From NCBI GenBank assembly GCA_001949185.1, contig BDGG01000013.1, positions 1,566,617-1,630,616 on the forward strand: a stretch of 64,000 nt of DNA, given 5' to 3'. The notes below the pieces were generated by a model. It ran no database searches and was not told where the DNA came from. It was given only the letters and a program-made list of their open reading frames with translations. This document shows positions 6,308 through 52,492 of the stretch, one piece after another; within the stretch, counting starts at the first letter, position 1, and every line of letters starts with the position of its first letter. The position numbers and the translations under genes were made by a program. The stretch comes from Ramazzottius varieornatus (lineage: Eukaryota; Animalia; Tardigrada).

Positions 6308-7204
6308 TTTGAAGGTACACCGAAGTCAGACGACGTTCCGTCAGTGAAGAACTAGCAGAGGACTGATATAGCGTTCTGAAGGTAGTGTTTGGAAGAAAGT
6401 GATCTCCAGGTACAACAGGTGGACTGGCTGAAGGCGTAATGGAAAAGCGGCGCAAACAACAGCATTTCTTGCCAATAGCTTATGCGGTAGAATGTTTCGG
6501 TAAGTCGATGTATACGCATAACAACTATTGAAGTGCCGCAACAGTTTTCCCGGTATATGGTAGGTAAGTGCCAAATGCGGAATCATGGTCGTTTACAAGT
6601 ACAACAAAACTATCGACGGAAATTCCCTATCCGTTTGATGAGCTTTATACTGTACGCATACTCGGCAATTCCTAACGCATTTGGTATGTGTTCCACGGCC
6701 GTAAAAAACACTCTACATGCCGGCGAATCAGGTATGCAACCGGTTCTCTCCACTGGAGGTACTTCGCGGGTTGGCGAACGATAAACAATGGTCTCACACC
6801 GAAGGATCTCGTGGAATCTACGGACACTGTAGCTTCAAACCTTTAATTGAAAGGGCATTCGAGTGTCACACAAGCAGCCAAGGTACTCCCAAACAGGGTT
6901 CTTTGGAGTTCTCCCATCCGTCAGCTTTCTAGCAAAGAGCAAAGTTTCGACCTGGCCAACATCGTAAGAAAAGACAACGACATTCTTTGATGTTTTGTAA
7001 ACCGATGCCGAATTTTGGGTGATACCGAAACAAAGTTTATTCTATGCACTTGCTCTATTAATAAAATGGGTAGAAAGAAGAAGAAGGATGAATAATCTGA
7101 CGCATGTTAATCAGACTCTTCATGGAGGACTGATACTACCCCGAATTCTACTAGTGAAACACAAAGTAGACTGCTTATGCTATACTGTACATATTCGCTA
7201 GTTT

Positions 7205-7609
7205 CTATCCGAGATTGCCCAGAAGTCCTTTCCCGGCACCCAGAGCCGCACCTGCCGCTGCTCCTTGCTTAGCCGAAACCCCTACAAACACGGAGAATAA
7301 TTATCTTGGTATACTTTCCTGGGATTCCGGTAAGTAAGATAAACGTTTTGTATGCGGAGTTGAAGTAATATACTTTTACTTACCAGGTAAAATAGCGCCG
7401 ATGAGGGCTCCTATCGCTCCACCTTTGATTCCACCGCTGAGGATACCTCGCTTCTCTCGTTGCACATTCTCGTCGACCGGAAGGCAACCTAAAAATGTAT
7501 TCAATAAAGAACCAGCTCACAGCGCTTTTACAAACCAAATTCCTTTGTACTCACTGGCGGATAAGACGAAAACCGCCAGAAGGGCGAACAGAGCGTGCCG
7601 GAGTGCCAT
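7205..7609 (-). CDS. Glycine-zipper prepropeptide A (putative antimicrobial peptide precursor)
   Basis: Exons 7609-7555, 7488-7384, 7281-7205 give MALRHALFALLAVFVLSAS-CLPVDENVQREKR-GILSGGIKGGAIGALIGAILPGVSAKQGAAAGAALGAGKGLLGNLG*. Confidence 0.8.
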
Positions 7610-8085
7610 GGTAGGAAAACCTGGAATGTAAACGAGACGAACCCGGAAATCTGGCTGACCTAACGAAATCAATTGCAATGAAAGGAGAGTAACGGCAAAC
7701 TACGAAACCTCCTGTATTTTTTCTTATGTCGACCTGGTGTCTACATATCCGCATATATCGCCCAAGGCCGTTGGTGCGCGAGCCACCATAACATGACCAA
7801 GAACTTTGACATTTACACAAGAAAATCAATGTCATGTACGTATAAAGTCGCGTACGTATACAATGCCAAGATGGTAAGCATGTTATTGGAATTAATACAT
7901 AGGTATTACGTATACACATATGAGCGCCACAATGTTGTTCAGATCCGACAAAAAGTGTCTGCTGCCCAAAAATATCTCAGTTCTAGATGAGGGCGGAGAA
8001 GTGAGCAGGCAAGGAGGAACTCAGCTAAAAGTGAAAGACCGGCAAAATACCGACAATTATGGTAGAGCAATTACGTAGCCCTTCC

Positions 8086-8510
8086 TTATCCAAACATGCC
8101 GCTAAGACCGGACTGGTGTTTTTGGACATTCTTTATTGCTCCGGCTCCGGCTCCCAGAGCAGCACCAGCTTTCATACCGGTCCCGCAAGAAACACCTACG
8201 AAAGACGTAGCCGGTTGGTTAGCAGATAAACAGAAAGCGAGTGTATACCTCAAGGAACTTACCAGGAAGAATACAACCGAGAGCTCCACCCAGCAGCGCA
8301 CCTTTGATCCCACCAGTCATAATACCCCGCTTTTCTCGTAGCTCATTGACCGGCAAACAACCTACAAGCAAGAGAAAATTTAGAACCTTCTCAAGCTGGG
8401 TATATCGTTGGAAAAACTTCCTCAAATCAAGGGTATATAAAGCAAAACTTACTGGTAGACAACACGAAGAGGGCCAAGAAGAAAAACAAAACTTGATGAT
8501 AGACAGCCAT
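8086..8510 (-). CDS. Glycine-zipper prepropeptide B
   Basis: Exons 8510-8453, 8361-8263, 8195-8086 give MAVYHQVLFFFLALFVLSTS-CLPVNELREKR-GIMTGGIKGALLGGALGCILPGVSCGTGMKAGAALGAGAGAIKNVQKHQSGLSGMFG*. Confidence 0.8.
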
Positions 8511-8987
8511 TTTGCAAAATGGATTGGTATAACGCGAACTCGGATATCGCCGGAGGCCTCTGCGGTAAGCGGAAAGGAAACTGGGGAAAGTTTGGACGTT
8601 TGAAAGTTGCGTCAAGAAATTCAGGTATTTATGTCGCATGCGGTACGAGACTTATATCAGTTTATGCTTTCGCGCGGTGGGCAAACGCCACTTCGCTAGC
8701 CACTCTGTTCGTCATCGCCACTCATGCTAGGTAAGCAAATTAGACCACTCCATTTCTTGAAATTTTACAACGTAAATATTGAATAAACTTCTCAGAGGTG
8801 CTCAGAGTACAAGTGCAGTCATCAAGGAACAAAACTCCAGCCGAACAACAACAAACTTGATAAGACGGATGTTGGCTGATTCAGATTATGCTGTACACTA
8901 AACCTATACAGTGTTCATTCGTTATGAAAATTCAACATGGAAGCTAGTGGACACAAGTTAAACCAGACTGAGATAAACCGGCAGAAT

Positions 8988-9291
8988 CTATCTACCATTC
9001 AACACTTTACTGATCATATGCATCGCACCAGCTCCTAAGGCTCCTCCCGCAGCACTCTTCTTCGCATCCCCACCCAAAACTTTACCGAGTACTCCGCTAA
9101 TGGCTCCGCTGACCAACATGTCTTTGGCTATCCCACGTTTCTCGCGCAAATCCTGGACGGGTAAACAGTCTACAATGGAAGGAAAGACATAACGAAGGCC
9201 AACCAGAAGCCGAAACAGAAACTCTGTTACACTTACGGGCGGAAGCGATGAGGACGACGAGCAAGATGAGTGAAACTTTATGGCATTCCAT
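8988..9291 (-). CDS. Glycine-zipper prepropeptide C
   Basis: Exons 9291-9237 and 9169-8988 give MECHKVSLILLVVLIASAH-CLPVQDLREKR-GIAKDMLVSGAISGVLGKVLGGDAKKSAAGGALGAGAMHMISKVLNGR*. Confidence 0.8.
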
Positions 9292-9825
9292 GGTCGAGCC
9301 TAAAAGAATTTTGCACTGGAAGAAGGTCTGGATTATCACAGAAAGTCGATGGAAGGACGGCTCCGTAAAGGTTGATCAAAAATTCGGAATGGTCGGAAAA
9401 ACAACTATGCTGATAGGTATTCTGAGTTAGGTTTTACAGCGTATTGACTATGACTTACTTCCTATCGAAGCCACTTATGTTTATTTGAAAAGCCAGATAA
9501 TGATCGGTGACGGTGCTCAGAGCGCGGAAAATCCGGTTGCGGACTAAGAAACAGACCACGAGACTTTTTCATACAATAAACAAAACGACCCACAAAGCCA
9601 CACGTACAGCATACGTACTGTCGATCAAAGTTGAGTCAACAACCTGTTGAATTTACGAATCGAGCGACGCAAACCAAAAGCACTCAGCGAACTCTTATCA
9701 TTCCACTTTATTTATAATAACAACCATTCAGTGTACAACAGGGCATAAAATCTGCCTAAAAAGATAAAAATACTGACGTCTGGAATACTGTCAGAACGAT
9801 GAGAAAGCTAAAAGTATTCTCAATG

Positions 9826-12800
9826 TCAAATCGTCAACCAAGAGCCATATTGTTCAGCCGTGCTTTTGATACATTCCATCAAGGATTCTTCAATGCCCAT
9901 TGTCACAGCAGTCTCACTTCTAAAACAAGGTTTTTTGGTCGAGTCACCAATTAAAATAAAACGTTGAGCAAGCATTAAAAAGCCATACAAGGAAGGCTGA
10001 AGCATCTGCGAGGCTTCATTGACCAGACAGACATCGAAGAACCGATGCATCAACGCCGGTTGTCGGAGTGTTCCGTTGGTGGTGGCCACTACGTTGGCTG
10101 ACCGAACGGTCTGAGCGAAAATGTCATAGTTGGTCTGAGAAGCGAGAACTTCCGGGGAGAGGTCCTTGAGCTCGGTGTGCATGCGAGAAGCCGGGCCAAG
10201 GCGAAGAAGCTTCACCGAAGAGTTGGTCTTCGCAGAAAGGAGGATATTGTCGAGTGTGGAACCGTTCGCGGAGAGGAAGAGAACGGACTGCTCACATCCG
10301 ACGAGTATCTGGAGAAGACTGGAGACGAAGGTGTTCGAATCTGGAATAAAAACAAAATGTGAAAAAAAAGCAAAAAGGATTCACGTTCGGAAAATCGAAC
10401 GGAAGCCGCCATGTTGCCAGCCGCAACCAGCGCGCATTTGATGCAACCCGTTTATTATCACCGAGGTCCCTCGTGCGCATTTGCCACTACGACTCGGGTG
10501 GAGATAAACCGAATCGAAAAACTCTGCGCATCATTCGAATTAGACCGGTAATGTAGAAGTTACCTGCGCAATTTTTGGTGTCGATGAAGACATAGTCGAG
10601 GCTCAGCAGACACTTCACCACGACCGCTTGTTGTTCTCTTGGGAGGATCCTGATCAGACACCGCGTATCCAGTAGCTGTTTCTTCGGCATCTGTGTCGCG
10701 ACCTGCGGCTTCTCTTTGTCCAGAAATAGCTTCCTTAACCTATCGTTCTTCTCCCCCTGCTCCATCAACTTCATCAAGCCATCGTACGCTCCTGCCATCG
10801 ACGACGCCGAGTAGATGTATTTGTCTACACGAAGGAGTCGACTTTTCAGTTTCGGATCTTGAAAAAACCTGTCAGCTTGAACCTACAAATGACATGAAAA
10901 TACTTTCAACAAGGGGGAAAAGCAAAGGGGGAACTCTTGCATTTCGGGACTGCAGGAGGAAGTTAAACGGGAGACCCTTACCTGTAGTTTCGTCAACGGG
11001 CTTTTCTCAATGGAAGTGATTGTACAGTAATCAATCACTACACCGTCGTTGTTGTCTTCTCGCAACAGAACTAAGTCGCCCACGCTGAGTGAAGTATTCG
11101 TTGGGAAAGGTGCAGCGAGGGTGTAGGATAGGAGCTGGTTGGGTGTGGGGGAGATGTCGGTGATGCGGAGACCGCTGACGGAATGTGGGGCCTTGTCGGA
11201 GGAGACTTCACCGTCTTTCTTTAACCAGAGATCGAGCACGGAAGACTTTTGAGAGGAATGCTGCGTCTCGATGTACAGTATAAGCATCCAGCGCTCGAAG
11301 TAGGAGAGATGAACATCGGTCAAGTGCGAAGTCTTGGCTTTGAGGAGCTGATGAATATAATGCCCATCCGGCAAAGTCTGAAGAAAAAACACACTGTTTC
11401 AAAAATCACAACAATCAAATAATCATCAAGACTGTAGAAAATCGAAGAAACGAAGAAAATCAGAAAATAACAATAAGGTAATGGTATTTAGGAATAATAA
11501 CTGTAATGAAAAATGGAGCTTTATAGTATCTTAAAGGAACTCGCCAAGCACTCTTCCCTCTTGTGGCGCACGCATACAGTAATACTGGTTGAAACATTGC
11601 GCCACTTGGAAGAACAATCTGTTCGGCTCTGAACTGTTGTCCAAAGTGGCGAGCATTTCCGGTGTTAAAGCTGGAAACGTGCGCCATTGGGAAATGAATT
11701 TGATCAAGTTAGTTTGCGGAGCCCCTAAATAACAAATTCAAATTCTAGATCCGTTTTTGAAGGTACACCTGGATAACGTTTCGTGGTTCTTCCACTTGTT
11801 TGTAAAACAAGGAGCACATGGTCGACAGCTGACACTGCGAGCATATTCTTTCGCTGTCAATCGGTGGTGGAAGGTTCATGACGGCTTTTCCTTGAACGAA
11901 ATGACATCGCTTCAGGTAGTTGCTGATATCATTCCTCATCCTCACCAACGCGCTCAGCTCCGCCGGCTTGGCCGTCACCGTCTTCCATTCGCCGCTCTTG
12001 GCGTAGTAGAGAATCCCCTCTTTTATGTCCATCCTGTATTTCTCTGAGAGAAGAAGCGTGTACAGCAAAACTTGTCCGGTGTGCGATATTGCATAGGAAG
12101 TCTTTCCTACAATCACGAACAATTAATACAGAAATAAAATACGGTAAAAAAATATTCGATTTTGGAGATTTTTGACCAATTTTTCACCTTGCCTGTTTTG
12201 ATCTCCAAAGGTTTGATTCCACCCGGTGTCTTCAACGTCATATCCACCCTTCCTTTCACACCATACCTCGGCGACCATATCCATTCCTCGATATCCACGA
12301 TGCTCACCGCCGGATTATTGAGCTCAGTCCAAGCCCAGCTTTCGATGTTCGGAATGAACCCTGAAGCGATCTCCCTCACCCTCTCCTCATTCACATTCAA
12401 CGCATACATGTCCTGTCTATACCTCGGATCGACTAGCAACTTGTCCAGAATACTCTGCGAGGACTCAGCGACGACTCCAGACTTTACAGACACAACAAAA
12501 GCCACGGAGATACGCTGCATCAAGTCATGGACAAGTGTCCCGATGAACATTTCCATGGACGTGTCCGACCGAACGATCTCCTGTAACAGAGCTTTCCTCT
12601 CGCAGTAGTTGGCTCCACCGATGAGTGTAGGGGATATTAATGTATCCGGATGCAGGATGAGGTAGTTGGCTTGGTCGGAAACGACGCAGGTGTGAGTGTC
12701 GGGGTCAAATGTCCCAATGATAATGACAGTGTCTCCGACTGCAACCCGCGTCTGAACCCAAAATCCTTCGAGTATGCAGAACGTCTGTACATCGTTCTGA

Positions 12801-51980: not shown

Positions 51981-52492
51981 CTAGCCGATATTGAACTTGT
52001 TCATCAGCCCACTGAGGCCTCTTGAGGATCCCGGGTTGCTGTCAGCTTCAATGGTGCGAGTGTTGTCGATGTTGGAAGGCGATGCGTTGTCGTGCTTCTT
52101 CCGCTTGAACAGCCCAGCTCCAGCGCCCAAAGCTCCTCCAGCAGCTGCTCCTTGCTTCCACGAAACCTGTAAGATATAAAAGAGGAAGGCTGGGCACTGG
52201 GTAACAGGAGGGAGGTCTCGGATAATATTTGGAAACAAGGAAGTGAGGCGAAAGAAACTTACACCAGGGATGATGGCGCCAACCAGTCCACCTAGAATCG
52301 CTCCTTTCACACCCGTCCCGACGACGCTTCTTTTGACTCTAGCTTCTTCAGATGGACCACCAGGAGATCTGCACTCTAGAAAGGAAAGACAAACTCAAAC
52401 TTCCATCAAGCCTGTGAAAGAAAGAGACTTTTCTCACCTGCGATCAAGACGCACAATGCGAGGAGGACGACGCTGGTCTTGAGGAAAGCCAT
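51981..52492 (-). CDS. Glycine-zipper prepropeptide D (dispersed member of the family)
   Basis: Exons 52492-52438, 52375-52263, 52166-51981 give MAFLKTSVVLLALCVLIAE-CRSPGGPSEEARVKR-SVVGTGVKGAILGGLVGAIIPGVSWKQGAAAGGALGAGAGLFKRKKHDN...GLSGLMNKFNIG*. Confidence 0.8.

Follow-up and report, generated by a model that had tools for sequence, protein, structure and literature searches.

What do three small genes that stand in tandem on contig 13 of the Ramazzottius varieornatus assembly encode, and what could their products do for a tardigrade? The genes lie at positions 7205 to 9291 of a 64-kb stretch of DNA that was analysed as a whole and is called the window below; all coordinates are positions within it, the genes are numbered 1-3 by rising coordinate, and all three are on the minus strand. 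The original prediction, made from the letters alone, saw three spliced mini-genes for secreted glycine-zipper peptides and proposed a new antimicrobial or membrane-active family. Here we report that the genes are transcribed and spliced, that they belong to a larger family with homologs in another tardigrade and in nematodes, and that the encoded peptides carry a domain similar to that of bacterial glycine-zipper proteins. The kind of domain is already known, and several members exist as database entries without functional study; what appears to be new is its use in animals as a family of secreted peptides that would be processed by a convertase and are probably amidated.

A transcribed cluster of three spliced genes

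The features of the cluster are as follows.

7205-7609, minus strand: gene 1 coding region, exons 7609-7555 (55 nt), 7488-7384 and 7281-7205, ATG at 7609
7207-7205, minus strand: gene 1 stop codon, from sequence and translation
7554-7489 and 7383-7282, minus strand: gene 1 introns, skipped exactly by spliced contigs of four runs
6834-7713, minus strand: gene 1 transcript from cDNA contig cover, 5' end near 7703-7713, 3' untranslated region to 7020-6834
7448-7459, minus strand: gene 1 R-E-K-R codons, predicted proprotein-convertase site, from translation; both Arg invariant in 18 family members
8086-8510, minus strand: gene 2 coding region (RvY_16564), exons 8510-8453 (58 nt), 8361-8263 and 8195-8086, ATG at 8510
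8452-8362 and 8262-8196, minus strand: gene 2 introns, from cDNA contigs; public model RvY_16564 joined at the same junctions
7845-8626, minus strand: gene 2 transcript, template-switch-oligonucleotide tags at 8622/8626, T-run before 7845 as poly(A) site
8327-8338, minus strand: gene 2 R-E-K-R codons, from translation and family alignment
8988-9291, minus strand: gene 3 coding region, exons 9291-9237 (55 nt) and 9169-8988, ATG at 9291
9236-9170, minus strand: gene 3 intron, skipped by spliced cDNA contigs
8649-9548, minus strand: gene 3 transcript, from cDNA contig cover
9135-9146, minus strand: gene 3 R-E-K-R codons, from translation and family alignment

All five introns run from GT to AG in phase 1, four of them with a GTAAGT donor. 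The exon translations give the same order of parts for each precursor. It opens with 18-19 residues of hydrophobic signal sequence; a split codon for Ser or His comes next, followed by Cys-Leu-Pro-Val, some acidic or polar residues, Arg-Glu-Lys-Arg and a peptide that begins with Gly-Ile. The predicted mature peptides have 46, 57 and 48 residues in genes 1, 2 and 3, a net charge of +3 to +4 and a Gly+Ala content of 40-54%, and each carries two G/A-xxx-G runs, which L-P-G-V-S parts in genes 1 and 2. In gene 3 a single exon holds the entire pro-piece and mature peptide. Both the same-strand mini-genes with phase-1 introns and their predicted products, a signal exon followed by a CLPV..REKR pro-segment and a cationic, Gly-rich peptide of 46-57 aa starting with GI, were borne out, the former by sequence and cDNA and the latter by the exon translations.

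The transcript evidence comes from contigs of four public runs, belonging to four different studies, that were mapped to 6600-9900. Each run contains one spliced contig per gene, and the five predicted introns, whose junctions had been named in advance as the thing to look for in transcripts, are skipped exactly with 0 mismatches. Read along the plus strand, the skipped segments have the ends CT..AC, corresponding to minus-strand GT..AG. Behind 7703 and 8622/8626 the contigs carry loose ends that are the reverse complement of what we take to be the template-switching oligonucleotide of SMART-type cDNA kits, marking capped 5' ends. Although the run records only guess 'RNA' as the source type, the adapter tags, the poly(A) tail and the removal of introns make this label safe; the contigs are minus-strand cDNA. 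Two runs from 2022 that are labelled as other organisms also carry the cluster transcripts without a mismatch, and represent either the same species relabelled or mixed samples. Contigs beginning at 9695-9754 show that the stretch beyond gene 3 is transcribed as well.

Public annotation covers the cluster in part. The model of gene 2, RvY_16564, joins the three exon translations exactly at the junctions found here, but takes as its start an ATG at 8639, which precedes the tagged cDNA 5' ends at 8622/8626 by 13-17 nt. Because this ATG lies upstream of the mapped ends, the 43-residue N-terminal extension of the model (8511-8639, minus strand) probably arose as an artefact of annotation; translation is likely to start at the signal-peptide ATG at 8510, which corrects a public gene model. 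An exon-by-exon search within the allowed length range found no public model for gene 3, its only match being a 53-residue open reading frame (ORF) fragment at 94% identity, and a search by single exons showed no public protein model for gene 1. Among the paralogs some are named 'Glycine zipper domain-containing protein' in UniProt and others 'hypothetical protein'. The expectation that gene callers miss the family agrees with the search result for gene 3 and was wrong for gene 2 and for two paralogs described below, RvY_16579 and RvY_16520, which are annotated.

A zipper domain shared with bacteria

The core of the predicted mature peptides matches a bacterial domain. Animal and bacterial YMGG-like sets aligned in hhalign over 76 columns with a probability of 98.4% and an E-value of 6e-15, figures to be read with the low-complexity composition of the sequences and the picking of the bacterial set from matches to the animal query in mind. 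With phmmer, bacterial PF13441 proteins were matched at E 1e-7 to 1e-3 among 1.8 billion sequences, and the N-terminal part of the NCBIfam model YiaD_Gzip_OmpA matched the signal-plus-zipper region at E 3e-7. Profile matches to the PDB gave a Legionella OmpA-family lipoprotein and TraT as the best solved relatives, and the structural neighbours in the ESM Atlas were all PF13441 clusters. AlphaFold2, run on an 18-sequence alignment, predicted a helix at residues 32-51, a turn at 52-56 and a second helix at 57-78 with moderate confidence (mean pLDDT 66); Foldseek against the PDB returned no match, a bare helical hairpin being uninformative in such a search.

By the thresholds of Pfam itself the window genes fall short. 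One public family protein scored 17.5-19.1 bits against Pfam cut-offs of 25-28.9, below the gathering threshold, which was passed only by RvY_13333 (PF13488, 27.4 vs 25) and a homolog from the nematode Aphelenchus avenae (PF05433, 31.4 vs 24.2), while precomputed database tables assign PF13441 to several members. On these sequence matches we place the family in the glycine-zipper clan (PF13441, PF13488, PF05433), as a divergent branch of animals. The statement that the peptides belong to no named family has accordingly to be given up: the core is a YMGG-like glycine-zipper hairpin by the hhalign result, and UniProt already names paralogs for the zipper. A cuticle or structural glycine-rich protein was also considered and set aside, the conserved unit being a 40-residue two-helix domain behind a convertase site and not a repeat array.

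The closest non-animal sequences are bacterial and fall into two groups, PF13441 lipoproteins and small secreted proteins of Hyphomicrobium, both of which share the L-P-G-V-S-A turn motif and the flanking zippers almost letter for letter. With bacterial YMGG-like/Omp zipper proteins such as the YiaD type and TraT, the animal proteins have in common the two G/A-xxx-G helices joined by a short Pro-Gly turn, an N-terminal signal peptide followed by Cys, a length of ~80-130 aa and a polar or basic tail. Unlike them, the animal genes have introns, a eukaryotic signal peptide, R-x-K/R-R before the domain and amidation-type ends. Unlike the OsmB, SlyB and YiaD lipoproteins they also have no lipobox, and their Cys stands in a C-x-P pro-piece that R-x-K/R-R cuts off from the domain.

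How large is the family? A six-frame search of the R. varieornatus assembly (55.8 Mb in 200 contigs) found at least 11 members, that is, at least eight paralogs beside genes 1-3, and the claim of a tandem multigene family was confirmed. Contig 13 has five members: genes 1-3, RvY_16579 and RvY_16520, the last lying 117 kb before the window start. RvY_16579 is the fourth member within the window.

51981-52492, minus strand: RvY_16579, exons 52492-52438, 52375-52263 and 52166-51981, identical to the public model

Its site reads R-V-K-R, and a K-R-K-K run precedes its long tail. RvY_16520, like gene 3, is without the second intron, and since the frames of both read straight through L-P-G-V-S, they give independent support for the second-intron splice in genes 1 and 2. 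Contig 8 holds RvY_13330, RvY_13331 and RvY_13333 and also a multi-unit precursor with R-A-K-R and R-V-K-R between its zipper units, and one further member each was found on contigs 2, 17 (RvY_18029) and 5. The multi-unit frame of contig 8 (1830311-1831165, minus strand, 333 codons) shows a 'G-P-V-G-A' zipper subtype and His/Thr/Asn-rich spacers, and one of its units is above the PF13441 cut-off; its sequence suggests a polyprotein precursor within the same superfamily.

Homologs were sought with a HMMER scan of 1.8 billion representative sequences followed by cluster look-ups. Hypsibius exemplaris has the adjacent genes BV898_14013 and BV898_14014 as well as BV898_15936 and BV898_00127, and one protein each was matched in the nematodes Panagrolaimus davidi and A. 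avenae, both tolerant of desiccation or freezing. These two were the only named non-tardigrade animals among the matches listed, which may reflect biology or sampling. Proteins of the same layout without an organism name, from metagenomes or transcriptomes, were also matched. The family is therefore not lineage-specific, as had been proposed, having homologs in H. exemplaris and two nematodes and, at the level of the domain, in many bacteria. A 243-aa protein in the European Nucleotide Archive (ENA) shows two tandem zipper units with a basic run between them and a long Arg-rich stretch before; to judge from its sequence it may be another polyprotein-type member from a eukaryote, or a mis-called gene.

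The conservation of the precursor was read from an alignment of 18 animal members that included the nematode ones. Both Arg of R-x-K/R-R are invariant in 18/18, and G41, G45, G60, G64 and G68 of the zippers are nearly so. Mean pairwise identity is 0.32 in the signal, 0.54 in the pro-piece, 0.40 in helix 1, 0.55 in the turn, 0.52 in helix 2 and 0.16 in the C-terminal tail. It had been supposed that the prepro part is conserved and the mature part strongly divergent. This is true of the tail and untrue of the zipper core (0.40-0.55): in conservation the mature core is roughly on a par with the pro-piece, and divergence is confined to the C-terminal tails. At the DNA level, similarity between paralogs is limited to the coding exons. 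Nonsynonymous differences per site (pN) were fewer than synonymous ones (pS) in every one of the 12 exon comparisons between paralogs; dS was near or above 1 and synonymous sites were at or near saturation, indicating that the copies are old and under purifying selection.

Cysteines show a pattern of their own. The Cys of the C-x-P motif directly after the signal peptide is found in nearly all tardigrade members and in neither nematode member.

7484-7486, 8357-8359 and 9165-9167, minus strand: Cys codons of the C-x-P motif in genes 1, 2 and 3

It is reminiscent of the +1 Cys in bacterial lipoproteins, but lies within the pro-piece that a convertase should remove. In gene 2, two further Cys flank the L-P-G-V-S turn (8264-8281, 8185-8193), and the contig-2 paralog likewise has a Cys pair across the turn; in these two proteins the pair may form a disulfide staple of the hairpin.

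Processing and a candidate function

The features expected of a convertase-processed, amidated peptide are all present, namely a signal peptide, the conserved R-x-K/R-R, a C-terminal Gly or Gly-basic end and genes for the processing enzymes, and the predicted layout of signal peptide, short pro-piece, furin-type site and cationic Gly/Ala-rich peptide agrees with the translated sequences. Entry of the precursors into the secretory pathway is strongly suggested. So is cleavage at R-x-K/R-R, since the site is invariant, the spacers of the polyprotein carry the same site, and the genome encodes several P-domain convertases. C-terminal amidation, too, is strongly suggested, by the 14 of 20 members that end in Gly or Gly-K/R and by the copper monooxygenases of the amidating-enzyme family that the genome also encodes. 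Shuffled tails gave a mean of 5.0 such ends and a maximum of 12 in 20,000 shuffles, a comparison that is not a true probability as the paralogs are not independent. Many of these ends consist of a hydrophobic or aromatic residue plus Gly.

From these elements we propose the following course. The protein would enter the endoplasmic reticulum and lose its signal peptide, and a furin-type proprotein convertase would cut after the invariant R-x-K/R-R, releasing a cationic peptide of 46-57 residues whose terminal Gly, or Gly plus basic residue, is probably turned into an amide. The core of this peptide would be a YMGG-like hairpin made of a helix, the L-P-G-V-S turn and a second helix. By analogy, its small-xxx-small faces could let hairpins insert into lipid bilayers and pack together, self-associating. 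Bacterial outer-membrane lipoproteins such as TraT, and bacterial toxins of the glycine-zipper kind, insert and pack through the same domain. A complex prediction with four copies of the hairpin scored 0.00, which is no verdict and counts neither way for self-association. The role we tentatively favour, at somewhat less than an even chance, is that of an extracellular, membrane-active, bacteriocin-like host-defence peptide, with high basal production that stress increases further. The net charge of +3 to +7 speaks for it. The membrane-active or antimicrobial role of the original prediction is, on this view, a reasonable hypothesis.

Two known systems help to frame this candidate. Frog dermaseptin and plasticin precursors consist of a signal peptide, a short pro-piece ending in K-R and a Gly/Leu-rich cationic peptide, frequently with C-terminal amidation. 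They have the same layout as the tardigrade family with no sequence relationship; the frog peptides are hypervariable single helices, whereas in the tardigrade family the core is a two-helix domain that is conserved and has bacterial counterparts, behind a pro-piece that is not acidic-rich. The second system is CdzC/CdzD of Caulobacter, contact-dependent glycine-zipper killers in which a leader is followed by one or two zippers and the tail is short and polar (PMC5380434). Cdz-like proteins are defined by a length of 60-151 aa, a leader ending in G-G/A/S, zippers flanked by Pro or charge, and a short polar C-terminus (PMC5380434). Compared by description only, the tardigrade peptides resemble CdzC/CdzD and class IIb bacteriocins in their small size, cleaved leader (predicted here), one or two zippers of small hydrophobic residues and polar tail, and it is by analogy with the membrane-insertion and aggregation mechanism proposed for CdzC/CdzD (PMC5380434) that we suggest one for the tardigrade peptides. 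Unlike the tardigrade family, CdzC/CdzD have a double-glycine leader, leave the cell by type I secretion and require an immunity protein. The only sequence link to bacteriocins is a sub-threshold PF10439 match of one H. exemplaris homolog at E 0.005.

Several points weigh against a defence role or the domain assignment beneath it. First, conservation of the zipper core extends from tardigrades through nematodes to bacteria, while antimicrobial peptides usually evolve fast. Second, most of the bacterial homologs are lipoproteins with a structural or stress role and not toxins. Third, the charge density is modest. Fourth, Pfam detected no zipper family at E<=10 on the single exons of the window, the domain being interrupted there by an intron, and none at E<=0.01 on the models RvY_16564 (gene 2) and RvY_16579. 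Lastly, the sole induction found followed radiation and bleomycin, not infection (PMC11233135, supplementary tables).

Competing explanations and meaning

The only expression data found are the supplementary tables of Anoud et al. 2024 (PMC11233135), on which this paragraph draws. After 1000 Gy, BV898_14014, BV898_14013 and BV898_15935 of H. exemplaris were up with log2 fold changes of 2.27, 2.08 and 1.71, and with bleomycin the same three were up (3.52, 0.97 and 1.06). BV898_14013 was also seen as protein by mass spectrometry, with three peptides and 54.6% coverage, and was up 4 h and 24 h post-irradiation and after bleomycin, which placed it among nine 'tardigrade-specific' proteins common to all three conditions. 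A homolog of Acutuncus antarcticus was up with bleomycin (PMC11233135, supplementary tables). The coverage of BV898_14013 is compatible with peptides lying wholly after R-x-K-R and over both zippers, and is no proof of cleavage. The family was absent from the supplementary tables searched of R. varieornatus transcriptome studies, and no publication discussing these genes was found, including by full-text search for locus tags. These data fit a stress-inducible effector and do not separate defence from self-protection.

The latter is the core of the main alternative, in which the hairpins stabilise the animal's own membranes or extracellular surfaces under desiccation, osmotic, or oxidative/genotoxic stress, much as bacteria have stress-induced glycine-zipper lipoproteins of the OsmB and SlyB type. 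We regard it as possible, though on balance unlikely. The induction of the H. exemplaris homologs and the A. antarcticus homolog by radiation and/or bleomycin (PMC11233135) would suit it, as would the resemblance of the domain to bacterial envelope lipoproteins and the tolerance of the two nematodes with a homolog. The nematode sampling is tiny, however, and may be biased, immune effectors are typically stress-induced too, and the R. varieornatus tables searched hold no record of desiccation induction. The convertase site and the amidation-type ends moreover suggest export as free peptides and not membrane anchoring.

The same processing signals could instead belong to neuropeptide- or hormone-like precursors that yield short amidated signalling peptides, with the zipper as a spacer or a co-released peptide. 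The signal peptide with the invariant R-x-K/R-R has this layout, the hydrophobic or aromatic residue before Gly in many of the 14 amidation-type ends is in keeping with it, and several members carry K-R-K-K or K-N-K-K runs between zipper and tail. What makes this reading improbable is that the 40-residue zipper is conserved and the tails are least so, the reverse of a neuropeptide precursor, and that there are many paralogs, high contig word depths and a stress-induced homolog seen in whole-animal proteomics.

Recent bacterial contamination, or horizontally acquired glycine-zipper ORFs without function, would account for the bacterial nearest relatives (Hyphomicrobium secreted proteins and lipoproteins sharing L-P-G-V-S-A) and for the intermingling of animal and bacterial sequences in the tree, but is scarcely credible, contamination being rejected by spliceosomal introns at conserved positions and by capped, polyadenylated cDNA, and the genes moreover sitting among animal genes on a 1.66-Mb scaffold, with coding exons under purifying selection and orthologs in other tardigrades. 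In that maximum-likelihood tree, of 36 animal and bacterial domains over 40 usable columns, the rows are intermingled with weak support, and the tree gives no direction of transfer. The domain may have been transferred long ago, which would not deprive the genes of function.

Returning to host defence, a wider scenario may be drawn, which we consider rather doubtful in its entirety: an ecdysozoan host-defence family that arose from a bacterial-type zipper hairpin, possibly with Alphaproteobacteria-like donors, was refitted with introns, a convertase site and amidation, and expanded in anhydrobiotic animals, where it would provide the antimicrobial peptides so far missing in tardigrades and also act as a membrane effector, induced by stress, that connects immunity to radiation and desiccation cross-tolerance.

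A review of tardigrade immunity described tardigrade antimicrobial peptides as still to be found, as of 2020 (PMC7056985). The family offers concrete, synthesisable candidates for these missing immune effectors, being short, cationic, probably amidated and highly expressed. It also points to the reuse in animals of a bacterial-type, membrane-inserting zipper domain as a secreted peptide that a convertase would process. Its H. exemplaris members belong, without having drawn comment, to the small set of 'tardigrade-specific' proteins that ionising radiation and bleomycin induce, and the family may therefore bear on the stress tolerance for which these animals are studied.

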